From positions 1-64,000 of the forward strand of contig DF236978.1 in the NCBI GenBank assembly GCA_000708835.1: a stretch of 64,000 nucleotides of DNA, given 5' to 3'. Each line of letters begins with the position of its first letter. Positions within the stretch are counted from its first letter, which is position 1. The stretch comes from Klebsormidium nitens (lineage: Eukaryota > Plantae > Klebsormidiophyceae). Below, piece after piece: positions 2,097 through 26,688 of the stretch. The notes beneath the pieces are model-generated. The model saw only the letters and a program-made list of their open reading frames with translations. It was not told where the DNA came from and ran no database searches. Position numbers and translations under genes: made by a program.

Positions 2097-5000
2097 ATGG
2101 CCGGGGCAGGACTGATTACCCCGCCGGTATGGGCCGCTGCACCGCAGGCCCTCATCTCGAGGGCGGGGACGTCAAGGGGCTGGCATGCGGAGGTGCCGCG
2201 CTTCCTCTGCCACTTGCACCCGCAGAATGGCTTAGCTGTGCGTCCGCTGCCTAGCAAAAGTTTGGCCGAGTTCCAAAATCCAGGAAGGAGCTTTTCCCCT
2301 ACCCAGGTTTCCTCGCATGAGCGCTCATGCAGATCTTTTGACATCAGATCTGAGGTCAGCGGGCGCAGTGGGAATTGTGCGGAGTCCTGCCAGCGCGGTG
2401 GAAGCCTGCCAGGGAAGCGAGCGCTCCCCTTTGCGGCGCCAAGTCCCCAGAGCTCAAGGGCGAGGAGTCGTTTGCATGCCCTTGCAGGACCTTTGCTAGA
2501 TAGATTGAGGGGTCAAAAGCGGCATGCAACAGAGGGCGATGAGGATCTTCAGCTCCGGGATCTCCTGGAAGATCTCAATCAGAGGATACAAGATCTGAAT
2601 AGTCAGTTGAGAAGCAGCCAGCGTGAAGATGGGGGTGGAGAGGATGGTGGCGAACGCGTGCCCTTGCTGAAGACGGTCAATGTTCCGGCACATCTTGTGC
2701 TCAAGAAAAGTGAGAGTGAAGCAGTGGCTGCTTCTGAGAAGAAGGGACAGGAGGCTGCCTTGGAAGAAGAGTGGACACCCTCGGCGCTGACCACGATGTT
2801 GGTTGACTACTCAATGATGGTCGCGAGCATCTGGGCAATGAATGGAACCATCAAGCAAGCTCTTGGGCAACAGGTATGTAAGCTGGCTGTCATGATTGGA
2901 ATGACCCTTGAATGGTTGATTGAGCTTGAAACCAATTTTAAGGGTTTGTATTATCCTTTCTTCGTTTGCATGTGGGAAAGTCATCATTTCATACTTCTCA
3001 CTAAGCAGGGTTTGGTGACAGCAACTTGGATGCTTCAAGGTTGAATATGCTGGATATTGCATTCAGACATGCTTTGCGTGTGAGCATCAGACAATTTTTC
3101 TTGAGAACCTAGACAACCAACCACTCAAGCCCTGTGCTTCTTTTCATGTCCATTTGATTTTCCTCAAGCTCATGTACTGTGACCATACAATTGCTGACCT
3201 CGACAGCGTCATGGTCAGTTTCTTCTGTTGCAAGGTTTCTCTTCAAGGTCAGCAAAGCTGGACCGTTCCTGGCTGTTTGAATGCTGTCAGGTTGTTTTCA
3301 AATGCAGTTGCAGATAGGGGTTACTGAGATTTTGGCCGTCACCATCTTAACAAAGTTGCCTTTCTTTCAGGTGCCTGCCGTGGCCATGAGTGCGGTCAAT
3401 TCCATTGGCCAACCTGCCCTCGACGCTGTCAAGAGTGTGGCGCCACCAGTGGTGAAATACATAGGGGAGCCAGCCATGGTCGCTGTGCGCTATGCAGGGA
3501 TTCCTCAGGGCATCGGCCGTGTTTCTGATTTCATCCGTTCGACCCCCGATCTCCGGGGTAGGTTGGGGGGCAACAGGAATAGGAGGAGGCTTAGCGGCGT
3601 TGCAGCAGCATCTAGGCTAGATAGGCAGGGCTCGCAGTCAGTAGATGATAACCAGTATGACTTCACGGATATAGTGTCGGCAGCTAACCGGCAGTCATTG
3701 GATTGTGACGACCAGGGTGAGGGCTCGGCAGCTGATGCCAGCCCAAGCTGGTGGAAAGGCACCCTAGGCAGCTGGGAGCCCCTTCGGTGGTGGGGCTCAT
3801 CAGGAGAGGGCAAAGCAAGTGAGGAGGAGGGAGCGGCTGCAGCGCAGGACCCTCTGATCTGGCCCCGCCTTACTGCTGCTCGAGAGGCGAGTACCGCACA
3901 AGGCAGTGGGGAGACTAGCATACCAGAAAAGCTGGGTGAGGCAGGGGTGATTGCTGCAGGGGAGGGAATTCTGGGAGCAAAGGTTGCAGGTGCTCAGGAG
4001 CAGCCGTCAGAAGCACCCGGGTGGGATGGGGGCCAAAAGGGCGAGGACCCGCAGCAGCCCCTCGGTTTCAGCTTCAGTGCGGCGGGGCTCTTGTTTCCGT
4101 ATCACCTGGGGGTGTGCCAAAAGCTTATGGAGGCGGGCCTTCTCACGGTAAGTTTGGTCTTCCACGTGCGAGTTGCTTTGACTGTACCTGGAATGCTTCT
4201 GTCCAATCCTTCTTCCTAATGCAAGTCCGGGGGTAAAATGCTTATCTGTATATACATTGTTGGCGATTGTTGGCCGCTTGACTGATCTCTGGTGCATTTC
4301 TGAATTAAGTGGTGCGCTTTATTTCTGGACATTGGTTCTTCTCCTGCCGTAAGTCCCTTCCTCCATTTGCTCACTTGTGCACCTCGTTTATGTACAGGAC
4401 AAGACTCCGCTGGCTGGCAGCTCTGCCGGTGCCATCGTTTCTGCTGCGCTTGGGGCGGGGGTGTCGCCCGTTGAAGCATTGCAGATGACCAAGGACCTGG
4501 CAAAGGACTGCCGGAAGAACGGGACTGCAGGACGGCTGGGAGTAAGGACTGGAATCAGCTCAGTGCACAGTGTGGATGCCAGCTGTTTCGATCAATCATA
4601 GCTAGTCATAGAGCCATCATAGATGTGTAGCCCTCTCTTGAACTGTGTACCATTGTAGACTAGATTAACTGCAGACAATCCAGCAAACAGGAATTGTGTG
4701 TGCAATGTTTCTTTTGACTGTTTGAGCAACACTCGTAACTCCTGCTCTTGCTGAGGTGGGTCTCCTGCATTGCAGGCTGTTCTGAGAGGCATCTTACATG
4801 AGGTCCTACCAGAGAATTGCCATGAGATGTGTAATGGCAGAGTGCGAGGTGAGCCATGGAGTGCCTTGTTCAACGTCTTTTCTCGGCCCCAAACGAAGGG
4901 CTCAGCTGTGAGACCGCTCACCTCAACGCGCGTGTCTCGCGACCATCTTGGCCAGTTCCATACGTAGGTTTTGATTCTGCTAGTTGTGTATAACTTGTGC

Positions 5001-6366
5001 ACGTGTTCACAAGCCCTGTTTTTCCTTTCCATCTTATGTAAAGCTTCTATGACTGAATGTACTCTCCTTCTGTGTGCAGTAGCGGTAACACAGCTGTTTC
5101 GGTGGCCTCGGGGCATCCTTGTGGACGAGTTTTACTCAAAACAAGACGTCATTGAAGCGCTGATTACCTCCTCGTTTATTCCTGGGTAAGGCTCGCTAAC
5201 AGTCTTTACCAAAGCCTTGGCTCGAACACTTTGGATCATTGTCGTTCTCAATCATCATATCAAGCATTTTGAGTTAGTGTATTTTTCTGACAGATGTGTT
5301 CGTGGTCTCTAGGATGCTGTTAGATCGCTTCTGGTCCTTGCACATGCCATTGAAAGATTAGCAAATGTGTTCGTGGTCTCTAGGATGCTGTTAGATTGCT
5401 TCTGGTCCTTGCACATGCCATTGAAAGATTAGCAAAGGAACAATGACTCGGATTTGCCGTCCTCTAGGGAGGCAGTGCAGCTTTGCTTCAGAACACATAC
5501 CCCTCCTGCCAAACATCATGTTGTGAAGCAACTGCAGCTTGTTGAAGAAACGCTTTGAACGATGAAGTTTTTCGAACGTGCTTCATTGCTGTCCGGTCGA
5601 TGTCTGCGAAGTGCCTCTCACATTCCCATTCTGACATCGTGTGCAGTTATCTGGCCCCAGCTGCGGCGAACGTGTTTCGAGATCGGTACTGTATCGACGG
5701 TGGTATGACGCTGTTCATGCCTCCGACAGCTGGGGAGGAAACGGTAAGGCAACTGAGCAGATTGTAGCAAATTTACTCCAGATTTGCACTCGCTTTTAGT
5801 CTCGCGAGTCCAGAGAAAAGGCCTTAAATTAGGGCGCCGTCAGTCTCTGCAGGGACCCACGTTTTATCTTTCTCGCGAAACTCACTTGACGGATCTCTGA
5901 CCCCTTTGTCCTTGTACGCAGATCCGTGTCTGCGCCTTCCCGGCTTCTGCGTATGGGCTCCAAGGTGTACAGATCTCCCCCGACTGCAATCCAGATGGCC
6001 GTGTCAGCCTCCGACAGGTGCGTCACCCGCTCTATGCGTTTATCAACGAAGCTCGCGTCTACTCAGCACAAGTAGCACTCTTGTCCTCTAGTTCGCTCAT
6101 TCCTGCAGCTCCGTGGCCCTGTAGTCGAGCTTGTCGTACTCGCAAAGGAAGGGCCGCATGCATCTTGCTGCATCGATCTGCAGCAAGGCCGCTTGAACTC
6201 ACATGTGCCTCCTCTTGTGCAGCTTTTGTCGTGGGCTCTTGAGCCGCCCTCCGACGGCATTCTGGACGAGCTGTATCTGCAAGGCCATGCGGATGCTGCT
6301 GTTTGGGTGAACAGTCGGACGTCTGCAAACAAGGAGGGCGCGGACTTTCAATTGGCTCAAGTGTAG
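2097..6366 (+). CDS. Patatin-like phospholipase / lipase (PNPLA/ATGL-like) with long N-terminal extension
   Basis: Exons 2097-2873 (start uncertain), 3371-4147, 4398-4541, 4776-4848, 5080-5185, 5647-5743, 5922-6017, 6223-6366, GT-AG and in phase. Motifs: FSFSAAGLLFPYHLGV, nucleophile GSSAG, SSFIPG and catalytic IDGG. Confidence 0.85.
5294..5435. repeat. Intronic tandem duplication, 2 x 71 bp
   Basis: Unit ATGTGTTCGTGGTCTCTAGGATGCTGTTAGAT(C/T)GCTTCTGGTCCTTGCACATGCCATTGAAAGATTAGCA at 5294 and 5365, with one internal mismatch. Confidence 0.95.
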
Positions 6367-7873
6367 GGTCCTCGGATGAGGCAGGTGGCCGCCTATTGAT
6401 GGTATAGAAAGCTATGCTAGAAAATGTCCGACATGCAAATTCAATTGCTGGCAGCAACATTGTACATACTTGGCAAAAATTGAAAGGCTTATGCTTTACG
6501 TGATAGACAACGGCTTACATAGAAAGAAGCTCATATAGAAGAGAGTAAAGCGAATTCGAGATATTTTCCAAACAACATTGCTTGCCTAAATCTGCACATG
6601 AATCTCTGCAACTTTGATGTGTTTTGTCACTTCCACTTCGCGACATTAGATAAGGAAGACAAATCTCATCATTGGTACACGGTTGAGATTGGGCCAATGA
6701 CTTCCCCATCAAACTGTGGACTTCACAGTTTTAGGTTGACCTTTGCATTTGCCTAATCTGCTTGGCGAACGTGGTGGGTCTTGCAGAAAGCTTACTGTCA
6801 TGTGAAAGCAAGATATAATGTGCCGTGCTCTAATCGTGCATCGACCGGAAGTAAACTATTGAAGGATTCTAGGTTGCATACATATTACGGTTTTACTTAC
6901 CATGCATGCGTGCAATTCTGATCGATCCGGACATCTGTCGGACTGGTTGATGCAAAGTAATGAAATCTGCTTCTAAATGCAAGCTGCTGTAGGTGGTTAT
7001 ATTGAAAAATTGTGCAGCAGTTCTCCATATGAAAGGTCCGCATATATGCATATAGGTGTAAGCAAGTGACGGGGGAGCATGCATGCATGCCACGAGCACT
7101 AGGTGTGCATGCTGCACAGTGGATGTTCAATACAAATTCTCGCCGGCAATCGGGCCAACTTGTAGATTAAATGAATGACATGTTATCTTGAATTTCCTCA
7201 AGTTATTATTGATCGCTCATGCATCAATATAGTTGCTAGCCAACATTGACAGAGTTCTTGCTCTAAAGCTTGAAAGACGGAGCTAGTGTCTAACTTGATA
7301 GCAGATTCAGACCACTCTTCGGTTTACTAGCTTTTCTACCTGGGGAACCTCAACTTGCAAGCAGTAAGAGTGCAAGGAGAGGGCTTTCCAAGTTCCGGCT
7401 CTTCGATTGAGAATAATAATAACCTAGGTCCTAACTTCTATAAGACTTTGAGGTAAGTACGTAGTAAGTACCTCAGCAGAAGAACTTTAGCCTTGGAACT
7501 TAAATTGATTGTACCATTTTGCTTTGCTTAACCGCCGTTCGATCGTGACATCTAGGCCGTCCAATCTCGTATCAGCTTTTTCACTGCCACGCGTCAGAAG
7601 GCCTGGGCCTGGACAGTGGAGGCTGGGTTGCGGATCCTGATTCTTTCTGTCGACAAGTGGACTGATCCGCTCATGGCCCGAGGATGGAAACCTCTGAAAA
7701 AATCCGTGATTCAGATGCAAGAATGCTATCTATGTGTATGTAACAGTATGTGGGAACTGTACTGCTCCTGCTTGCTGGAGACGACGCATCTCCTTCACCA
7801 CTTCTCGGATCTCCGCCCAAGATAGCTTTTCCTGCAAGCTGGGTTTGAGACAGTTCACCAGAGCGTCAGCAAG

Positions 7874-10800
7874 ATGAGAATCTCCGACCTCTTCACGTCG
7901 GTCGGCATCAATGCCGCGCTCGTGTTGCTCTTCTTGTTCCTCTATTCCATATTCCGAGTGCAGTGGATAAATGCAAGAGTTTACTATGCGCGGCACTTTG
8001 TGCGGGACAAGGGGTGGGGAAAGCGGAGAGAGCTTGGCTTTAAAGAAGAGCTGAAAAGGCAGGCGAAAGGGATGCTGGGTTGGGTCCCAAGTGCAGTGAA
8101 GACCGCAATGAATGAAGATGAGCTGCTCAGAGTGGCGGGGGTGGATGCGGTGGTCTTCATGCGCATCTTCCGAACAGCGTAAGTCCCTCATGCAGTTAGA
8201 TATGTGGCCAGAGTCAAAGTTTGTTGCTGGCCGTCGTCCTTTGTGGTGCGCTGCCCTAGAGCTGCTAACTAGGCTGATGGGGTGGGTGGCACAAAGTCGA
8301 GATCCAAGCCACAGCAGTTGCTCAAGTTTCTTCCTATCCTCCTCTCAGAAACTAGCGTCAAAGATGGACAGCAATGCTGTATGAAAATGTTCTTCGTGCT
8401 TGGAGTCGATTCGAGTTGTGTCTTCCTGTGTCCTCCTGAAGGCAAGAGTTTCAAGTTCGTAATGTTGAACATTAGGATTTCATTGACAAGAAGCAGGTTG
8501 AACAATTGACAAGAAGCGAGTTTGACATCATTCATGCATGAAGGCTGTGCGTGATTCTCACTGCCCCTCTCCCATCGTGCAGTATACACCTATTTGCAGT
8601 TGCTTGCTTTGTGGGCTTGGTTGTTCTTCTCCCAATTAACGTCACCGACGAAGCTCTGGCAATAGATGCCCAGAGATACGGCAACTTTACGGTGGACGAG
8701 CTGGACACCCTCACGATTGCGAACGTTCAGAATGGATCTAAGAGGTACAGCCCACTTGCTCTCTGCTACACAGCTTCCCACAACCCCTGCAATCTGATGC
8801 TTGCTAGCACTGCCACCTCTCAGATGATAATTCATGTTGCCAAAGTCCATTGAAGTGCTCATGATTGGGACGCAAAGCTCTTGAACGGGAGTCTTGCTAA
8901 AGTGCGTCGTATTCCAGGCTGTGGGCCCACCTGATCGCTGTCTACTTCATCACGTTCTACACCTTTGCGCTGCTCTACCGCGAGTTTCGATCCATCGCGT
9001 ATCTTCGCCAGAGGTAAGTGGGTTCCCGACAATTGATTGCCCCGAAGGCTGTTGTTTAATTACAGGGGCCCGAGCAGCTTTTGCGGACATGGCGAAGTGC
9101 TATTCTCACACCTTGGAACAGCCGCCAATGGGCACAAAGGGCCTGCTTGTAAGGATCGTTTGCGTGGTGTTAGGAACACCTGCCAGCCGTCTCTGAGCTC
9201 TTCAAGAGATGAACGAGCCGATTCTAGAAAATATGGGCTCCCAACAGGTCCTTCAAAGTCGTAATCATCATACTTGTGAACCTGACGGCACCGCACTCAA
9301 GGGGAAACTTTTGTTCACCATTATGACATGGGTGGCAGGGGGTGAAGGTCGTGGGGTGAAGGTGCGATTGTAAAAGCCTTTGAACCATTGAAAGCTGTGC
9401 TGAATTTTTTTTGTGTCGGGGCACACAGACAGATTGCGGCCGCACGCCCCGCTCCAGACCAATTCACGGTGCTGGTCATCCACGTGCCCCGGCGCCAGCA
9501 CAAGAAGGACGGCGTCAGCCGGAGCGACATGATCGAGCGCTTCTTCAACAAGTACCACGCACTCACCACTCTTGTCAACCATCCAGTCTATCGGGTGAGC
9601 GACCTCTGGCCAGCCTCTCATACATTGTCAGAACCTCAAGTTAGAAGCTGCCGCTTCTCCTCTCCGATTTGTTAATTAGTCTGCAAACAGCTTCGGCCGA
9701 ACGCTTTTTGATTGGCCGGCTCACGGGTTCCTTGTCCAGCTTTTGCACCAACCTATCTCTTACACTTTCATTGCAACGCCTTGTTGGACCGTCGTTTCCG
9801 AGTAAGGAGCCGCCTGTGGTGCAGTCCATCCACATCGTGCGCCCCAAAGCTGCACCCACGGTTGTGTGTGTTGGAAATCTTGACGGCTTATTTCCCCGGA
9901 ATATGGGGCAAGCTTCCATTCTGGATTACTTTGGCGTAATGGGTCCTTCTTCGGTTGTTGATATACTGAAACTTCTTTGTTTGAAGGAGCTGCCTGATGG
10001 CGAGGAAGCCGAGCAGCCCATTACAAGGGCCGATGAATTCTTTCGAAAGGTCCACCGCCTGACGTACCACCTGTATCAACCAGTGTACCAGGTACGCTGT
10101 GTCATAACACTCAGCGTACACGTAGCTAGTCCTATGGATGCCGCTCAAGGCATAGCCTTGCAAGATTGAGCTGTCAGCGTCCGGTGCCCCTTGTCTATGA
10201 GCTCAAAAAAGTTCGTTACACTCTCGTTTGTTTCTGACTGGTGGTTTTTCGGTGGGTGTCGAGCTTTACCAAGTTTGGGTCTGAATTTACATTGGTTTGC
10301 AAGATACGCTTTCCAACAATTTGCTCTGACTGTGAGCGGCCATGTCCACGTCTCCCGTCTATTTGTCAGCTTCTTATGTGCTGTGACCCGACGTATTGCG
10401 CTGCCAATAACGGTCTTCTAGAGACTTCGTCGAGCTGATGATTAGCCTTGACTGCTTGTTCTCAGTCAGCTGTCAAGCGGCCGCTCCTCGCTCTGCATTG
10501 GCAACAATCTGTCATACCCCTGGCGTGCGTCACATTCGCCCTTTGGTCGTCAAACACACAGCCGCTCCCTGTACCTGGTCCTCTCGTCTCCCGATGCTCA
10601 CGAATTTGCCAGAAGTGCCCTGGCCTCTGATTCCATATTTGCCACTTCGTTTCGTTACTGCCCCATTCTTCTTCCCCGCGGAAAACGACCGTCCACCTCC
10701 GAGATCACGGGTCCCCATGTATAGCCGCTCATCCTTTCCGCTCCCGCTTGACCCCACCCCCCCGCTTAAAAAAACTCACTCGAAAAGGTTTAAGACCAGT

Positions 10801-13800
10801 CCTGACCGTAAGTGGCGCGTTGTCGAATTGGGCGACTGACCCGCGAAGTGCGCTCCCCTCCCCCGCAGGCGTCCCACTTGGAGAAGCTCCATGCGAAGCG
10901 CAAGCAACTAGAGCGGCAGCTGTTCAAGGCGGGGGAGCTGCTGCGGCGCCACCCGGAGAAGCGGCCGACGATGCGGCTGGGCTGGAAGCGCTTCCTGGGG
11001 CTCGGCGAGAAAGTGGACACCATCGATTGGACGACGCAAGAGCTGACGAGGCTGACGGCCGAGGCACGTGCCGAGCGGAATAAGATCCTGGCGGAGAAGG
11101 ACGACGCGCACGTCGTGCCTGCGGCGTTTGTGTCGTTTAAGAGCCGGTGGGGCGCGGCGGTTGCGGCGCAAACGCAGCAGGTAAGAGGAGAATGGCATCG
11201 ACTGGAGCTCTTTCTTGAGACGCATATGGTAGGTTTGGGTGGTTCGTGTGCGCCTGTTCGAAGAGCACGTCGAGATTGGTTTATCACATATGGTGCATGG
11301 GTCTCCCTCTCCTTGTTAAGAAGCGGTGTTGTTCGCTGATACAATTGTGGAACCAATTCTTGCTGTGTGTGTCGCCAAGCCAGTCCGCGGCAGCCAAGGT
11401 TCCGCAGCAGTGGCAGACTTGGGTTGCCAAAAAATGTAAGAACACCTTGCCAATTCGCCTTTCCCGAAACTCCACTTTTCACGGAGGCTTCTCTCGTCAC
11501 AAACTTGCCTTCACAACGCCCTACCTCTCTACGAAGTCAGAGTCTTCGTCGCAACCGACAATTTCTCACGCCCCGCCGTGTCCCTCGGTGCAGTCCCCCA
11601 ACCCGCTGCTGTGGCAGACGCAGTGGGCCCCGGAGCCGCGCGACGTGTACTGGCCCAACCTGTCGATGCCGTACTGGGAGAACGGGACGCGCCGGCTGCT
11701 GGTCACCGCGGCGGTGTTCGCCATCGTGTTCTTCTACCTCATCCCCGTCACCTTCGTCCAGGGCCTCACCGAGCTGCGCACGCTCTCGCGCTGGGTGCCG
11801 GGGGCGCGCGCGCTCGCGTCCATGTGAGCGCCTTCGCTTTGTCCCCTTTTTGTCGTTCTCCATCCAATCGTTCCTTTGATACTTCATGTCAAGTTTCTCG
11901 GTCCATTGGATAACCAGCTCGTATCCAGGGCCCACAGGGAAAGGAAGCTTTAGGACGTACAAGGTATTTTGTGTCGGCCATTCATAGAAGGTAGCAACAG
12001 CTGACAATGGACGCGGCGGTCCAGGATATCTGGAGGCCGTGGATACGCATTTCTTCGCGCGACGGAAGGATAACTTGGCCTTTGGTTCAGCAAGCGCATA
12101 AGCATGGTCTCGAAGAGCCTCACGGCAGCACCTTTAGGTAGGTGCATTGGCTGGAGAGCTTCGTGAGGAGCGCAGCCTTGCTTCCGTAGTCTCGCATCAG
12201 TAGACACACCGTTCGAGCTGGATTCAGGACCTGAGTACCGGCGAGCCATTGCAGTGATCGTGGGCTGATTTACAGAGGCACTTTCTGATTCGTGAGCATA
12301 CGGAAGAACTTGGGAGGGGCGAAGAATCGCTCCAGAAATCTGCGGATGTAAGGGCAACCTTCGAGCTGCATCCGTACGACCTCGAACATTAGCTGGCCGT
12401 TCCGCTATCCGCTCTCAGCCACCGTTCCGTCGTGTGTGCAGCCCGGTGGTGAGCCAGCTGATCACGGGGTACCTGCCGGCGCTGATTTTGACCATCTTCT
12501 TGGCGCTGATGCCGATGGTCATGATGCTGCTCTCCAAGATGGAGGGCCGCCTCTCGCTGTCCAGCCTCGACAAGGTCGCCTGCTCCAAAATGTGTGAGCG
12601 CACCAACTCCGTGGCCCGGAAAGCATCGTTTGTTGCAAACTTTGAAAAGCACTGGCCGTGTTTTGAGTGTCGTTGCTGGTCCGGTGGTGGATCGTTCAGC
12701 AGACTGCAGGCTGCTGTGCATGGGTCTGTGACGAGTGCAGCGCTTCGAGGAGCTTCTGGGTCGAGGATTTACGCTGTTTGAATACCGGGCAGTCCAAGGG
12801 CGAACAGCTACCCTTCAAGAAACATATTCTTCGTTCCTTCACTGTGGCCACAGTCGATGTAGAGCACTAAACAAGCGATTGGACGTTGACTGGACCAGGC
12901 CGTCGACCGAAGTCACCTGTTGCTTTTCTCTTACTTCACATGCTGCATACATCAGTCCGTGACTGATCTCAGGAACTTGACTGGTGTTCGGATCGACTAG
13001 CAGTGCTCCGATGTTCATTCTGCTTTCCTCACCGCGCAGTCTACTTTTTGGTGGTCAACGTCTTCTTCGGCACCGTGTTTGCGGGCTCCGTATTCAACAA
13101 GCTCAACTCGTTCATTGACCAGCCCAAGTCCATCCCCAACGCGCTCGCCGCAGCCATCCCGCAAAAGGTGCGCGCCGCCTGCCCTGCCGCTTGTTCGCAT
13201 CTTTTTGTGTCCTCGCGAGATCCTTCTGCTCCTATAAGCCCGCGGTGTCAAGAAACGCACTGCTTCCCCGTTCGTGATGCCTTTTCTTGGCTCATCTGCA
13301 ATGCGCTTTCGTATCCCCGATACAATCGCAACCCTTCCCGTAAAGAGCCTTGATTGGTGCTGCCATATGCCCCGAAAGTTCGAGCCCAAGGACATGGACA
13401 GAGACACGAACCTGCACGATGTCACCTATCCAGTAGCTCTTGACAAGATATATCCAGAACGTTCTTCTTCTCCACACTGCAGAGCACGTTCTTCATCACG
13501 TACATCGTGACGTCATGGGCGGGGTTCGCCCAGGAGGCCCTCCAGACGTTTTCCCTGGTGCGGTACTATTTGCAGTACGGCACCACCGCGCGCACCGAGA
13601 CGGACCGCGAGCGCGCGCGCCCGCCGCCCACCATGCCCCTGCACTCCACCGCCCCCAGTGAGCCATCCGCCATACGCTATCCATTTTAGAAGTTGTCGCA
13701 CGTAGGCAGTTCGCAACAAGCAATTGAATGCTCGGTCGCACCCGCAACGTGAGCCTCCTAGAAGGCGAGGTGGTCTATGTGCAGTCTCCTGTAAGGGATA

Positions 13801-17369: not shown

Positions 17370-20300
17370 TCATATGCGCCCGTTTCTCAGCCTTCGTCTT
17401 TGTCGGCTGAATTCGAGCAGCACCATGTGCGGGGCCGTGAGCGCCGCGAGCCCCACGAAGATGACCTGAACACTGGCCATCTCGAACGCCGCCACGTGGG
17501 ATGCCAAGATTGGGTGCTGCAAAAGGAACCTCGTCAGATGTTGCCCTTGAAAGGCACCTCCGTTGTCGCCAAACTCTCTTTCTTCGGAGAGCGCTGTACA
17601 CCTCCAAAGAGCGCTTTGGTTTCGCGGAGAGCGCGCACATTACCCTCCCTCAGTAAAGGGGCCACTAATCAGACGAATCCAATGACAGTTGGCGTGGTAG
17701 CAAGAGAAGATAAGTTGCCGCAAAAACTGGACAAGGGATAAGCACGGCGTGAAACCAGATTGAAGGTCAGACTAACACGTGTGTCTCTGGTCAGCGTCCA
17801 GTATTCACCAAGTGCCCCCCTTCTTACCTTGAGCAGCCCCGCAAAGACGGCGAGCGCCACCAGCAGCGTGACACCTGTCACCATCCCGGCCGCCTTGCCG
17901 ACGTAGCGCAGGTCCGCCAGGCTGGCGGGCGTGCTTTCGTCCGCGAAGAACGCGAGCGTATGGCGTAAAGAATGCAGCTGCACCGAAGCGGGAACTGTAA
18001 TCAGCTGCGTGTGTCTCCAGAACTGTCATGAAACGAATCATTGGCTTCGTGTTTATCCAGCTCAACGAATGGACGGATGCAGCTGCACCAGAGTCGTCGG
18101 AGCAAAGTTCAGGATTCGGAGCTGCCCCAAAGCTGCCTCGGAGACCCCCTCGCGCCCAAGCTGTTCAAGTTCGAAGGCTGCGAAGGTGCGCCGCCATATT
18201 GCCCAATACTGGAAGCTGCCAAAGCGCTGTCACGGTGATAATAGGAACCCCGCCTTTTCCAGCTCGGCCGAGGCAGAAACCTCACCCTAGAGAACCACAA
18301 ACACGACCAATACGTGGCCGTTAGGCGCATCTCGAAGTTGCTCGACAATCTGAAGTACTCAGCAGTCGATATTGGCCTAGTCGAAACCAGGCCTCACCGT
18401 ACAGAACGCGAGGAAGAAGCCCAGGAGGGGGGGCGCCAGCGTGCACCCCAGCCCCAGCAGCGCCATCTCTAGCCCGGCCGCGAGCCGCGACTCTCGAGTC
18501 AGACCCGGACCAGACGTCAGCTGTCCTAGTGTCTTCGATGACGTCAGCTCTTCCCGGGGTACGAGCTGCTCTCGAGCTGGGGAGCCCAAATGTGTGTCGG
18601 TGCGCGGCCCTAGGTAGCAGTAGAGGCTTGTGGCGGCGACTGCCAGCGCGGTGGGCAAGGCGAGGAGGGTGCAGAGGTGGGACACGTGGCTGGCCGCGAA
18701 TGGAGGAGCGAGGTGAGAGAAGAGGAGTGACGTCTGCAGGGAAGAGGGTCGTCAGCGACGGAAAGACGATGCCAAGCAGGGTCGTGATGAGACTAGGGCC
18801 ACTCACTTCATTCGACTTGGCGTTTGACTCTCAATCAAGAACATGTATCGAGTGGCTGGTTGCCGAGCTATCCTTCAGCAAGTTCGGAGTCAACACGGAG
18901 ATAAGGAGCACACAATAGCTGTCTGTACTTTGAAAAGTTGCCGGATTTGTGCAAGCAGATGCTTCACGCAGGGAGTCAAATACTTTGCAAAGCAGTAAAA
19001 TCTTAGGATCTCCTTCCAAACTTCCGCCTTTTGGAAGCTCAAATGAGCTGACAAAACGACAAAGCACAGCTCCGACAATGCACGGCTCTTCGATTCGTGC
19101 TTTCGTATGCATCTTCGGACCTGGTTATCTACACCAATGAGCTTGATTCGAAGCTAGGTCGGCTTTTGAGGGAACCTGTATCGGACGAAGTCGAAGGTCA
19201 GAACTTTTCGGCAACACTGTATGACAAACACAGGCACCTTCGTCTCACCTCCTGTTTGTGCAAAATGAAGGGCAGCGTAATGGGTCCCAGGCCTCGGGCT
19301 GCCACCTCTACCCAGTGCCACTGCCCCGGCAACAAGCCTTGTGCATCGTTGGTGCCAAAGTGCCAGGCGCTCGCGGCCAGCAGGCCCGCCAGAGAAGCGC
19401 CCGGGAAGTGGCACCACAGGAACACAACTGGAAGGCAAACGGGCGCTGTTCAGTTTCTGATAGGGACAGGCATTTCCTCAGCTGATCATGCAAAGAAGTC
19501 ATCCGCACTCTTTCGAGGAAAGGCTCAGCCTCGCAATGGCCGAAGGCTCGATTATGCACATCACAACGGATCGGTTCGAGAACCATGAAACACATAGGAC
19601 TTGGAAACTTTCGGCCTTCAGAAACGAGCACGCCCATCTAACTCCAAACTCCAGCTTTCCTAGTACTCTACCAAAGCAATCCTGATTTAGACGGAAGCTC
19701 GACGGGAGCTTGAAAACCTTGAGTTGTGAGCTTCTCTTGACTGAAGCAGAACCCCTTATGGCATTGACATGAACAACACCGCAAACTCTTAGAGCAGCTA
19801 GCCAGCTGACAATCTCCCCTGCGTGCAGCATTAGGGCCTGGGACTCCTCACCTAAGGCGGTGCATGCAGAGTAGGCCGCCACAAAGAGGGCGAGGTTCCA
19901 GGGCTGTGGCCAGGGCCAGGCCTGCTCGCGCATCAGCCCCTGAGCTGTGACCAGGTCCAGAGCACCGTGGGGGACGCCCAAAATGGCAACTCCTAAAGCC
20001 AAAATTGTTAACTGCAAATCAAGGTGTAACACAGGGGGTTAGGACGAGTCAACCGGCAGTGTTATTTTTCAAAGGAATGCAGCTAAGCTGCAGAGAATGC
20101 TTGTGCCGGCTGTAATCTTTTGGCGTGCTATGAGTTAAGGTGAATCAGGAAGCCAAATTCAATAGATGCATCTCATGATACCTCAGAGACTTGCTGATCT
20201 TCTTGTAGGAGGAGAAGGCTCAAGCAAGCGGCCTCACCTGTACAGTTGGGGACACGATTGCTGATCCCGTCAAATAACTGATCAAGAGCAAACCCGTGAC

Positions 20301-20912
20301 CCCAGCAAAAAACTTGGGGTGTATTCGCTGGGCTTTTCTGAGCAGTACCAGGGTCTCCTCAGTGCAAAATGTGCCTGGCTGCAACCCCCCCTCACGGTTG
20401 GCGCCTGCCGCTGCAGGCTCCAGATAAACTGCATGAGCAGCCGCCTTCGTGCAGCGCCGTTCTAATGTTCTCTGGTCACAATGTGCCGTTGCTAAGGACC
20501 GTAGAGCGGAGCCATCCCAGATTTGCTGTGCCTCTACTGTATTCACATTGCAAAGCTCTCTCTTTGTCGCCAACAAACCCCGCTTTTTCCAAGCCTGCCA
20601 CTTGGAGATTTTGCAAACAGTGGAGCCTGCAAATGAGTCCCTTGCTTCCAGATTCTCCCTTCCGTTGACATCCTCACTGAGACTGGGACCGCTCTGCTCA
20701 GGAACCACATTCTGCGGGTGTGTGCGTCTTCTGCAACCGTGACTCTGAAAATTCCTTTTTGTGGCTCCCCCTCCATGTAAGGGCTTCACAGCAAAGGGTC
20801 TGACGCTGTGGCCCAATGTCTCCTTGTAAGCCCTGCTGACGATCGACTCTTCCTGGGCAACACGAATGCTGGGCGTCCCTAATCTAGTTCTATGCAAGCT
20901 GAAGCTCGCCAT
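17370..20912 (-). CDS. blh: Brp/Blh family beta-carotene 15,15'-dioxygenase (retinal-forming), 548 aa with ~200-aa N-terminal extension
   Basis: Exons (minus) 20912-20238, 20011-19852, 19427-19249, 18733-18398, 17977-17828, 17516-17370 join in phase to 549 codons. Family motifs appear in the correct order: LGVPHGALD, SAWHFGTND, RGLGPITLP..H.ET..LF..L, PPLLGFFLAFCTLHSLRH, GLAALTAPHM. The protein is multi-pass hydrophobic. Confidence 0.9.
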
Positions 20913-21638: not shown

Positions 21639-22507
21639 CGAGCTTTGAACGCCAGCTCCAGTGTCGGCCACTGCTCGAGCCAGGCTCCGACCAGTCGGCA
21701 TGTTTTGTGGTAGGCAACGAGGCAACGGCCCCGCGGCCAGCCTGGTGAGATGTGCTGATGCTCATTGACAACTCGACAACTGGCACACAACGTCTCATTT
21801 GAAGCAGACAAATGTCTGTCTGCATTATGAAAGAAACGTGGAGCGCAGCAAAAGGCACAGCTCATCGTCAAATTTACTGCCTGATCATTCATTTATCAGT
21901 GCATCTGAGAAGCCGGCTCCTTCTCTAGCTGCCGAGTCCAGCAGCTTGCGCTTCCACTTCATGCAGCCTTTCTACCTAGCATGAAGGGCACTTTGTGATG
22001 GGTGCTCACTGCTGGGTAGACCCTGTGTCTTCGTTTCTTGTAACCGTAAGCTGCACGGTCGAATGCCTGCCCCCTGAAGTTGATGGCAGTGTATTAAACA
22101 GCAAAGTGTCCATGAGATCGGTGTAAAGCCTGCTTCAACTCAACGCATCTTTCAGCTGCTGAGGCGGCTGTCACGGTCTTTCAACGGACTTTCATTTACC
22201 TGCAGGGAGTCACCGACTTTTAGTGCGAGTTATCGGGCCAGAGCTGATCCAAGCTCGACCAGAAACTTTACCCGATTAGGTCTCGATTACCAGTGCCAGA
22301 TCTGCATGCTTCAGTACACTGGCTGCCAGCAAAACTCTCCATCTTGACGACTGATCTAGTTTGATTTGACAGCACACTCTTACATAGCAACTCTCTGCAA
22401 AAAGCTTAAGTCGCCCACATCTGACAACCTTCCCCACATTCTCGCACTCGCCGCCAGTAGTACGTGACGGGCCAAGTCCAGAGCTAACGCGCAGCACCAC
22501 CGTCACC

Positions 22508-25284
22508 ATGGTGTACTCACACGCTGACGCCGCAGGGTGGACTCTGTACTGGATCACGTATGGCATCATGGCGGTAACCGCGCTCATCTTCTTTGCGATG
22601 TCACTACGGAGACCCATCCAGCAGCGCTCGCATCACTGTAAGCAAAGCTCCTCTATCACTCCCTGAATTTGTCGGATCCTTCCATGGTTTACTCAAAGAC
22701 TGACTTTAGGGGCTCAGAAAGACTTACTGGCAGCATTGTTGTCAGGTCAAATGCATGTGTTGTCTCTGGAACGCCGGTAAAATACCCCAGGATGTGCAAT
22801 TTGTAGGAGGGGGCAAGACGAAAAGGACCCCCAAGAGGATGAAGGTTCTCGGAAGGATCCTCATTCGAAGGTCTACATTGAAATAAGTGATGATTGTGGG
22901 CCTTCGTCATTGGACTCGTAGATTGAGTAGAATTGAGACGAAGTTTGGGCATGAAGAGACTTGGCTTTTGAAGCCTTGAAAACGATCAAGCTCAGGGTTT
23001 CTGAGCGGAGATTGTTGCGACTAATCAAAAACCTGTGTTGGATGCAGATACATCCTTCCTGATCGTTGCGATTGCTAGTCTTGCCTACTACGCCATGGTA
23101 AGAGACTTGAATCGTTGCATGAAACAAAAGTTTAGCGGAGACAGTCATTCGCAAATTAGAGGTTTGTTGTCTCACATTCTGAGTGGAAAGGGATTGTGGC
23201 AAGAAGCTTCGTCTTGAAGTTGTATCTAGGCAACCTGGCTGGCGCCTTCCTGGAGGCTTGATAGAGAGAGCAATGCATGCTCCTCTTCAGGCCAGCAAAC
23301 TGTTCTAAAGTTTACCAAGGATCGCAGTTGAATCCGATCCTGTGGACTGCAAGCAAAGCGAAACTGACGTACTGTTGTCAGTCTGTCCAAGCCTCGCCTT
23401 AGAACTCCAATCTCGTTTCGAATTCACAAGCTGTAGTGCGCGGGAGATTCAGTGGGGCCTTCAGAGTTCAAAGCGAGGTTGCAAGGACTAGACTCAAGCA
23501 TAGTCATTGGCCAAGATAATGACGCAGCGAGCTCAAGCCGAGTCTACACTAAGAGCAACCTTCGCTTTTTCGCCGGCCGGCTCGCTAATCCAACTCGACG
23601 CCCATGCTTTCTGCAGGCTTCACAAGGCGGCAACACCAGGATCCGCGTTTACCAAGGACCGGCTGATTCATACCGTCAGATCTTCTGGGCGCGCTACGTG
23701 GACTGGTTCTTCACGACGCCGCTGCTCCTGCTGGACCTCGTTCTGCTGTCCAACCTGTCCAAGCTCCGAATCGCCGCCATCATGGTTGCCGACATCTTCA
23801 TGATCCTGACCGGGTTGTTTGGCGCCGTGGAGGCGCGCAGCAACAAGTGGGGCTGGTTCGTCTTCGGCTGCATTTTCATGCTCTACATCTTCTACGAGCT
23901 GCTGGTCAACGTCCGGAAGGGAGCGTATGCTCGTGGCGGCCAGCACGGTGGGTGTGCGACCAAGTCCTTATCTTCGGCAGGACGTTTATCTGACTGCCTG
24001 GTTCGATGGTTCACGTTTCTTACCACAGTGCCCGGTACAGTTGGGCCACTGTCCTCCAATATCTCAACCTGCTTGGACCAGAAATGGAAGAACGATATCA
24101 GGCGCCGGAGAGTGGGTCGACTTTTTCGCTTCAAAAGCTTCTGGAACGAACGCGTTCTGCACTAGCATGAAGGGGATGACGGGGGTCAGTATCAGAGCCA
24201 AGTCGTTCGAGGGATCTTCAATGCAGTGCGTCACACCGAAATTGGTTTGCTGTGCAGGCATGCTGTACAGCGTCCTTCTGGTGTGGCTGCTCATCCTGTG
24301 GGTTCAATACCCCGTTGTATGGGGCCTGGCAGAGGGCTCCAGCACCGTATCCTCCGACACTGAGGTAAGCGATCCACACAGCGACTACTGCCGAAGCACT
24401 TGCCAGCGTTCTAATAAATACGGACAGCACTTGCCTCTTGCTCGAGCGTCTCCTAGGATGTTGTTTCGATGTTGATTCACGGAGAACCGTTTGCTTTCTC
24501 TTCTGACGGGATGGATTTCATTCACGTACTCAGATCGCGGGCCCCAGTCTCAGAAAGATGGATCCTTTCCGAGCAACGCGTTGCCAGGACTTTTCCAAGT
24601 CGGTTTAGCCAAGCCACAACTGTAGACAAGCGTTTTTTCGTACCCCATTTTGCAGATTGCTTGGTACGCCGCTCTCGACATCTGCGCCAAGTGCGTCTTC
24701 GGCTTCATCCTTCTCCTGGGCATCGAGTCTATCGACCGCAAGAGAGCCGCCACGGGCTCGTCCAACAAACCGCCGATGCCAGCTGGCACGACCAGGTACG
24801 CTTGCAGTAGAGAGTTTGACCATATGGTGGCCGTCCTCTTTCCCTAAGTGTCCTTTATTGCTTCTTAGATTTGGCGGGGAATGTGCCGGCAGAATAAAAG
24901 CGGCCCTGAAGCTTTGCGTTAAGCTGCTTCACGTCAAATTCTTCATTGCATCAAACCACCTGATCAACCAACCGAACCTTCAACGCTTCACCTCCCCGCA
25001 CGTGAATTTTCTATGAGGGCGTCGACGCCTGATTCCTGGGCGCAAGTAAGAGGGCTTGTAAGCGCATTGTATGCTTCCATTTGTTGTCGAGAGCTGTGTT
25101 TCCAGTGTACCCTCGTAAGAATTGCGGCTACAGAGTCTCGGGTGTCTATGTTCGGATCGGCAAAGACAAGTGAGTCGACTGTTCTCCTGCTGAAGCTGTC
25201 GGCTGGTCGCCTGTGCCTTGCAGGACGGGAGCATCTGCGGCGCCCGCCGCGGCCGCCCCTGAGGTTGTCCGCGACGTTGTCTAA
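22508..25284 (+). CDS. Microbial (type 1) rhodopsin, DTD-motif light-driven proton pump, 272 aa
   Basis: Exons 22508-22637, 23048-23097, 23617-23947, 24258-24364, 24656-24795, 25224-25284 join in phase to 273 codons. Helix C WARYVDWFFTTPLLLLD, helix D ADIFMILTG, helix F LWVQYPVVW, loop AEG...DTE, helix G LDICAKCVFG containing the Schiff-base Lys. Confidence 0.95.
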
Positions 25285-26688
25285 ATTAAGGCAGTCAGCT
25301 TCTGCAGTTGCCAACTTATTGAACCCCATCGGCCCTATGGAAAGTTCACCTAGCTAGTGTACAGGAAGACAGTTTAGATCGCGGTCACCAAAACAGCGTG
25401 CTTTTGGTTGATGTAAAGTATATTGGTAGGTCATGCGAATTACCCCTCTGGACAATTTAGGAAAGTATACTTTTAAAAGGGGGATGTAGACGACAAACTT
25501 TTTTACATGTTAGGTGCACGCTATTCAGATTGGCGGCCGCCAAGCCCCCGCCGAGTGAAAACAACGGCCTTATGGAGTTCGATTGCGATATTACTAACAC
25601 TTTAAATAAGGCGGTTCATGACCATTTCTTAGCTGAACGTCCCAATATCCCAATTGTCTTCAGGCCAGTGCGCAATGCATGGCATGACGTACAGCTCTAT
25701 ATTGCGAGAAATTATCAATAAAGGAAAGAATCCGACCACCTCAGGGTATAAATATTCATGCTGAGTGGCATTGAATTGACGAAGTAAAACTTGGATGAAA
25801 CACGCCCATGAATGTGCTATAGGCGAAATATGTAGGTAGCAGATGTTATGGCGGCCGCCATGGCTGGCCGGATTTGTATGCTCCAATGGCTGCATCGGGG
25901 ATCGAGCTGGCAACAGAAGGATATAGTATGCATCTCCGGGAATCTTCTATACCATGATGAATTCACCGATGGGCTGCGCCGGAATGTCAAGTTCAATCAA
26001 GCATATTGTTCACTATGATTTCGATGATCGAGTTCGCGACTCATGAACTCAACGTTATAAAAGATGTGCATGACTTTTGAGATAACTAAAAAGTGAAACA
26101 GGCGTGTCGATCAGGCCGGCGACATATACACCAGAGGACCGCAATAGCTAGTAGGTTGAAAGGATCAACTGCAAAGCCGTTGGCCATGTGCATGCGCATG
26201 CATGCTAGCTTAATTAAGGGACTTCATTAAACTTGGCGCTGATAAGCACGAAGTTCAAGTATACATAAGGTCTGACAAAAAAGCACACGAATGCCATGAT
26301 GCGCCAAGCAAGCACTCGAAAGGAGCTTCACTCAATGTTACCCCATTGTTTCCAAACACCATTCTTCTTAACCCCTCGATCAATTGCTGCTCCTACAAAT
26401 AAGGCAAGCCAAAGCATCGACTGAGGTGTTTGCCAACTATTGTATTGATTGATGTAGCAACCCAACACTGGGCTTTGAGTCACGCTGTGGTTGCCATCCA
26501 ATTGCAATTCTTGGACAATGACATTAAATCGTGAGTCAGCTTGACTCATACAAACCCTTGACGCGACCTGATCTCGACTTAGAGCGCTTCCGGCTTCATT
26601 TACATGCTTGATGGCGACCTTCGCCCTGCAAGCAGGGTACCTAGATTATTCCCCCAGCCCATTACCCCTTCCCTCATTTGCACACTCC

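Follow-up and report, generated by a model that had tools for sequence, protein, structure and literature searches.

The genome of the alga Klebsormidium nitens raises the question of what a bacteriorhodopsin-like protein does in a cell that lives by chlorophyll photosynthesis, and where such a protein obtains its retinal. The gene concerned lies on the forward strand of contig DF236978.1 (assembly GCA_000708835.1), at positions 22508-25284 of the 64,000-nucleotide stretch analysed here (the window), whose coordinates are those of the DF236978.1 record. It encodes a 272-amino-acid (aa) type-1 rhodopsin that falls in the eukaryotic bacteriorhodopsin-like DTD clade and whose most likely function is light-driven pumping of protons out of the cytosol. 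The adjoining Blh/BCD-family gene probably supplies its retinal. The rhodopsin gene is real and expressed, but it carries an existing annotation, and its family has been well studied. An original prediction, made from the letters of the window, had placed the protein in the DTD outward-pump class and not among the channel, sensory or enzyme-linked types; the completeness of the catalytic set and the nearest solved relatives, all of them H+ pumps, argue for the same class.

Residues can be compared with bacteriorhodopsin (BR) through the alignment to CsR, the Coccomyxa rhodopsin, which is gap-free except for three B-C loop residues, and through the CsR/BR correspondences already in print (K215/K216, D86/D85, D211/D212, R83/R82, E193/E194, E203/E204, D97/D96, T46 and Y57; PMC4657025). 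Helix C holds R86 (R82 in BR), D89 (D85), T93 (T89), L97 (L93) and D100 (D96), where D89 corresponds to the Schiff-base proton acceptor and D100 to the cytoplasmic proton donor. Further along lie the motifs VADIFM (residues 117-122), WVQYPVVW (185-192), AEGSSTVSSDTE (195-206) and DICAK (214-218). The retinal pocket formed in BR by W86, W182, Y185, P186, W189, M118 and D115 is kept as W90, W185, Y188, P189, W192, M122 and D119, the proton-release pair as E196 (E194) and E206 (E204), and the helix G residues as D214 (D212), A217 (A215) and K218 (K216). K218 aligns to K215 of CsR, and the spacing of E196/E206 to D214 equals that of E193/E203 to D211 in CsR. The counterion complex is intact, as are the proton-shuttle residues D214, R86 and Y57. 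Every residue listed in the original prediction was thus recovered, namely R82, D85, T89, D96 and L93 of helix C, D115/M118, W182/Y185/P186/W189, E194/E204, D212, A215 and K216.

Departures from BR are few. The position of T46, the hydroxyl partner of the donor, is occupied by S46, a conservative change that is found as Ser in 18 of 142 relatives, and the pocket shows the changes W138F, S141G and T142C, all states that are common among family members. The DTD motif itself is present in 139 of the 142 relatives of at least 200 aa, among which R82, D85 and T89 are invariant; R86, D89, T93, D100, D214 and K218 are invariant in the alignment A1. The pump signature is genuine, yet it is the norm of the family.

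The fold points in the same direction. Exon 3 alone matches the Pfam family PF01036 (Bac_rhodopsin) with an E value of 6.8e-24, accompanied by weaker, collinear matches of exons 4 and 5, and matches the CsR crystal chain 6GYH at 1.4e-23. At full length, the match to 6GYH reaches 6.9e-59, followed among PDB sequences by AR1 (4.7e-46), LR (8e-45) and AR2 (4e-39), then by the archaerhodopsins and BR. An AlphaFold2 model built on a 32-sequence alignment has a mean predicted local distance difference test score (pLDDT) of 90.2 and a predicted template-modelling score (pTM) of 0.83, with seven helices, a B-C beta-hairpin and a tail predicted to be disordered from about residue 243. The Foldseek comparison of this model ranks CsR at the top, with a template-modelling score (TM-score) of 0.97 (by target), a root-mean-square deviation (rmsd) of 0.9 Å and 46% identity, ahead of LR/Mac from Leptosphaeria, AR1 and AR2 from Acetabularia, the archaerhodopsins and BR (32-33% identity); normalised to the solved chain, the TM-scores to solved rhodopsins span 0.82-0.97. 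All of these closest solved relatives have been experimentally shown to pump H+.

CsR (6GYH; PMC4657025) is the nearest of them, with the same DTD architecture, a one-to-one match at S/T46, Y57 and the R, D, T, D, E/E, D and K positions, and an identity of 43-46%. Both proteins combine a short N-terminus with an unstructured cytoplasmic tail that ends in Val. They differ in host, CsR belonging to a trebouxiophyte and the Klebsormidium protein to a streptophyte, in length (304 versus 272 aa, the Klebsormidium tail being shorter), and at three pocket positions where CsR has S, F and Y and Klebsormidium G144, M148 and F141. LR/Mac (7BMH) and AR1/AR2 (5AWZ, 3AM6), also from eukaryotes, pump H+ outward and share the motif set; at 35-37% identity and TM-scores of 0.90-0.93 they are more distant than CsR, and LR has a longer N-terminus than the Klebsormidium protein. 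BR and the archaerhodopsins (1C3W, 6GUX) share the fold (rmsd 1.1-1.6 Å) and all proton-path residues, but only 32-33% identity; the Klebsormidium protein has one residue fewer between W189 and E194, and its gene, in a eukaryotic host, has introns.

By analogy with BR and CsR, the photocycle can be pictured as follows. All-trans retinal would be bound to K218 as a protonated Schiff base and, upon photoisomerisation, the Schiff-base proton would pass to D89. R86 would then swing outward and the E196/E206 pair would release a proton on the extracytoplasmic side, while D100, held by S46, would reprotonate the Schiff base from the cytoplasm. The expected outcome is H+ export from the cytosol in green light, which would hyperpolarise or energise the host membrane. 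S141G might move the absorption maximum slightly to the blue, as a matter of spectral tuning. In CsR the photocurrents are outward and do not depend on pH, and absorption has been reported at 545 nm (PMC4657025). Because L93, A215 and P186 are retained and CsR absorbs at that wavelength, we infer that the Klebsormidium rhodopsin would absorb green light as well.

These readings rest on a gene model that is well grounded. Reading of the sequence together with location of the splice signals divides the gene into six exons (Table 1), separated by introns of 410, 519, 310, 291 and 428 nt that all run from GT to AG, with 819 nt of coding sequence (272 codons plus TAA). Exon-by-exon searches, in which the word search scored on exon 3 gave 100% identity over that exon, led to the public protein P0001 (272 aa; GAQ79355.1, UniRef100_A0A1Y1HL70), named 'Bacteriorhodopsin-like protein [Klebsormidium nitens]', which then served as the reference sequence. 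All six in-frame exon translations occur in order in P0001, and the split codons TAT, GGC and AGG give its residues Y44, G171 and R253; the spliced model is therefore identical to the public one.

Transcript data lead to the same structure. For the 3.2-kb stretch, runs X1-X3, which belong to one study, contain a fraction of about 0.26-0.31 of the words sampled, roughly the exonic share. A single 1564-nt RNA contig from X1 carries all five predicted joints with zero mismatches, and most joints are repeated in contigs from X2, X3 and X4: joint 22637>23048 occurs in contigs of X1, X2 and X4, joint 23947>24258 in X1, joint 24364>24656 in X1 and X2, and joint 24795>25224 in X1, X2 and X3. Since these contigs lack the introns, they derive from RNA, and the gene is transcribed and spliced as modelled. 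The inclusion of exons 4-5, which carry helices F-G and on which the original prediction had made its reading depend, is settled by the X1 contig. That the 272-aa open reading frame (ORF) is bounded by upstream stops and TAA inside one mRNA contig likewise agrees with the predicted lack of a fused enzyme domain. A low-depth contig from X3 has an exon 1-2 joint (22636/23049) that leaves out 412 nt, two more than the 410 of the model; its ends are TG..GA and it would shift the frame; the 22637>23048 joint is canonical in the three other runs, and the X3 variant is probably an assembly slip in the CTATAC context. The leader contains four short upstream ORFs (4-13 codons; upstream ATGs at 22063, 22083, 22112 and 22306), for which translational control is possible.

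Table 1. Features of the rhodopsin locus in the window and of the corresponding loci on other contigs
Sequence	Feature	Coordinates	Strand	Content
Window	Blh/BCD-family beta-carotene 15,15'-dioxygenase gene	17370..20912	-	548 aa; PF15461; divergent from rhodopsin
Window	5' leader	22040..22507	+	At least ~468 nt, inferred start; RNA contig X1 matches collinearly from 22300 to 22637, with a further 260 nt upstream
Window	Exon 1	22508-22637	+	Met1-His43 and Tyr44 codon base 1; helix A after a short N-terminus
Window	Exon 2	23048-23097	+	Residues 44-60; helix B with S46 (BR T46) and Y57
Window	Exon 3	23617-23947	+	Residues 61-170 and G171 codon base 1; helices C, D and E with the B-C hairpin
Window	Helix C motif RYVDWFFTTPLLLLD	23692..23736	+	Residues 86-100: R86, D89, T93, L97, D100
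Window	Exon 4	24258-24364	+	Residues 171-206; helix F (W185, Y188, P189, W192), release pair E196/E206
Window	Exon 5	24656-24795	+	Residues 207-252 and R253 codon in part (two bases); helix G, start of tail
Window	Retinal-binding K218 codon	24689-24691	+	Exon 5; helix G, which also has D214 and A217
Window	Exon 6	25224-25284	+	End of the Ala/Pro-rich tail (…APEVVRDVV), TAA stop
Window	3' untranslated region	25285..25500	+	RNA contig X1 covers 25221-25500; continues at least ~60 nt past 25500
L002 (metagenome)	BCD	4870-5424	-	
L002 (metagenome)	Rhodopsin	8832-12158	+	73% identical to the Klebsormidium rhodopsin
L003 (C. subellipsoidea, CsR locus)	Carotenoid oxygenase	3873-7951	-	
L003 (C. subellipsoidea, CsR locus)	Opsin	10001-13668	+	
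L005 (C. elongata, as listed)	Carotenoid oxygenase	3988-9675	-	
L005 (C. elongata, as listed)	Opsin	10001-13405	+	
L006 (C. sp. Obi, as listed)	Carotenoid oxygenase	3693-9464	-	
L006 (C. sp. Obi, as listed)	Opsin	10001-13772	+	

The nearest relatives of the protein come from the environment and from green algae. Among the best 120 of 185 matches listed in a full-length search, two close relatives in Joint Genome Institute (JGI) environmental data share 81% and 73% identity and no other exceeds 49%; the named relatives are Trebouxia (47%), Coccomyxa CsR (43%) and many ascomycete opsins (about 38-42%), with no land-plant or other streptophyte protein among the named matches. In a quick maximum-likelihood tree, Klebsormidium and the two environmental sequences form a trio (support 100) that joins a further clade (89), and the two together group with the green algae Trebouxia and Coccomyxa (82); the fungal pumps stand outside this group as a sister clade, and the deeper supports are moderate. 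Of the groups that the original prediction wanted in a phylogeny, this tree covers the fungal pumps, not Acetabularia. The 73% relative, on the 65-kb metagenome contig L002, has the same six-exon layout. Over 223 aligned codons, from codon columns pooled from four exons, the comparison with this ortholog gives a nonsynonymous rate (dN) of 0.18, a synonymous rate (dS) of 0.99 and a dN/dS of 0.18, and the rhodopsin gene is under purifying selection. A pseudogene or a mis-spliced model is ruled out by this ratio and by the RNA contig with all joints. At the L002 locus, the JGI protein P0004 (249 aa; 10001-10750, +) is a prokaryote-style call that runs exon 3 into an intron, and the correct product is P0005 (271 aa, from a transcript).

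Next to the rhodopsin gene, and divergent from it, lies the Blh/BCD-family gene, three exon pieces of which match the BCD profile collinearly at positions 2-42, 46-107 and 236-264; its first exon (20220-20912, -; about 230 aa) has no Pfam match. The two start codons are 1596 bp apart, of which the rhodopsin leader fills at least 468 bp. On the other side, the rhodopsin gene is followed by Tim17 (-), lipoyl synthase (+) and arginyl-tRNA synthetase (-). The order BCD(-)/rhodopsin(+)/Tim17(-) is kept on L002, and comparison of the window with that contig found no conserved non-coding blocks between BCD and rhodopsin, only exon 1 being matched.

A similar arrangement is found in three Coccomyxa genomes, CsR locus included, in which a BR-like opsin gene stands head-to-head with a gene for an RPE65-family carotenoid oxygenase (PF03055). 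This enzyme is non-homologous to Blh/BCD and takes the position that Blh has in Klebsormidium, so that the genes for CsR and for the Klebsormidium protein are both head-to-head with a carotenoid-cleaving enzyme gene, of RPE65 type in one and of Blh/BCD type in the other. RPE65-type enzymes are the class that makes retinal in fungi. The pairing is not universal: no carotenoid oxygenase lies beside the opsin in Trebouxia, in two fungal-type metagenome contigs or in the lichen fungus Candelina. One known case in which an opsin is linked to a retinal enzyme is the co-regulated carX/carRA/carB/carO cluster of Fusarium (PMC5715946), which resembles the Klebsormidium locus in joining a pump-type opsin gene to a retinal-making enzyme and differs from it in being a fungal four-gene cluster with the RPE65-type CarX, whereas Klebsormidium has a divergent two-gene pair with a Blh/BCD-type enzyme. 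A quick literature query returned no report of algal opsin/retinal-enzyme pairs. There is about an even chance that green-lineage algae assembled divergent modules of pump and retinal enzyme at least twice, independently and with non-homologous enzymes.

A K. nitens rhodopsin has already been put to use elsewhere. From a screen of 31 rhodopsins, the voltage sensor 2Photron was built on one called 'KnR', which traffics to neuronal membranes and was mutated 'to block proton pumping' (bioRxiv 10.1101/2024.11.15.623698). KnR is very probably GAQ79355.1, because no other protein named for K. nitens stands beside P0001 in the best 120 of 185 matches listed and the other K. nitens rhodopsins are one channelrhodopsin and enzyme-linked types. 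If so, the protein described here would be the scaffold that was treated as a proton pump and that reaches neuronal plasma membranes.

Where the protein resides in its own cell can be approached from its topology. Helix A starts at about residue 8, leaving an N-terminus of only about seven residues, and in-frame stops precede the ATG in a region where the RNA contig is collinear. There is therefore no presequence and no room for a transit or signal peptide, in agreement with the original prediction; an N-terminal extension or transit peptide is ruled out by the stops and the collinear contig. Clusters of basic residues occupy the A-B loop and the C-tail, in line with a BR-like orientation in which the N-terminus faces outward and the C-terminus the cytoplasm. 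Without a presequence, the protein should enter the secretory pathway and reach the plasma membrane, like CsR, or an endomembrane. As native CsR has been located at the plasma membrane of Coccomyxa cells (PMC5781313), a plasma-membrane location is a reasonable assumption for the Klebsormidium rhodopsin. The C-tail comprises 44 aa (229-272) with 10 Ala and 5 Pro and ends in RDVV, close to the predicted Ala/Pro-rich tail of about 40 aa. The tails of P0001, P0002, P0005 and P0064, disordered and otherwise divergent, all end in Val, with RDVV in P0001 (within residues 268-272), RNVV and SSVV in others and AAEV in CsR, and the terminal valine may be a C-terminal export or sorting signal.

It has to be considered whether the pump instead sits in an endomembrane, such as a vacuole, a lysosome-like or a contractile compartment, where it would acidify the lumen in the light. 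The topology would be the same at either site, the N-terminus being lumenal or outside; and the 44-aa cytoplasmic tail ending in VV could hold sorting signals. Yet the sole native localisation of a close relative, that of CsR, is the plasma membrane, and KnR-HaloTag, if KnR is this protein, reaches the plasma membrane in neurons. The endomembrane alternative is accordingly unlikely, though it keeps some weight. A more radical proposal, as argued for some fungal opsins, is that the protein is mainly a slow-cycling or signalling photosensor or regulator in which proton transport is incidental. A chloroplast-bearing alga has no obvious need for a second source of energy, and fungal CarO, itself a pump, retards spore germination, a developmental phenotype (PMC4295100). 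Against this, the protein retains D100, S46, E196/E206 and R86, including the carboxylic donor that has been lost from sensory types; the ORF closes at 272 aa with no fused signalling domain; the neighbours are BCD and Tim17, with no transducer-like gene; and K. nitens possesses other rhodopsins, of the enzyme-linked and channel types, that serve sensing. A sensory or enzyme-linked rhodopsin was rejected on the retained donor, the closed ORF and the neighbours, and a mainly regulatory role appears improbable. Nothing specific speaks for a channelrhodopsin, a pump that moves Cl- or Na+ instead, or a relic without activity, the remaining types among PF01036 members, and these readings are scarcely credible. 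Helix B (residues 41-61) contains no Glu and hence no Glu ladder, Y57 (not Lys) and D100 (not His) are retained, and the tail of 44 aa leaves no long C-terminal domain of the channel type. The motif is DTD, not the TSA, NTQ, NDQ or DTE of Cl- and Na+ pumps and of proteorhodopsin/xanthorhodopsin, and the gene is spliced, expressed and under purifying selection.

Several points nevertheless weigh against the outward proton pump favoured here. In fungi, even relatives that carry the full pump motifs can serve signalling or development above all. W138F, S141G and T142C may shift colour or kinetics. A K. nitens proteome supplement of 1190 proteins has no rhodopsin entry, the protein being absent from it. 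The literature searched yielded no report of photocurrents, spectrum, localisation or native role for GAQ79355.1, no papers naming GAQ79355 or A0A1Y1HL70 were found, and the available text of the 2Photron preprint gives no accession, sequence or residue number for KnR.

As a gene, the Klebsormidium rhodopsin adds little: it is annotated as GAQ79355.1, crystal structures and electrophysiology exist for its family, and an engineered voltage sensor has been built on a K. nitens rhodopsin. What the locus does present is a bacteriorhodopsin-type pump with an adjacent retinal-forming enzyme, expressed and under purifying selection, in a streptophyte alga near the land-plant lineage. In such a chlorophyll phototroph, the pump might, among other candidate roles, help to maintain the membrane potential when light is green or shaded, or during desiccation, cold or low-oxygen stress. 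More interesting than the rhodopsin gene alone is its conserved pairing with genes for retinal-forming enzymes: if the pairs share a bidirectional, light-regulated promoter, they would parallel, in eukaryotic algae, the PR-blh operon of bacteria and the car cluster of Fusarium, and would argue for a real physiological role of the pump beside chlorophyll photosynthesis.

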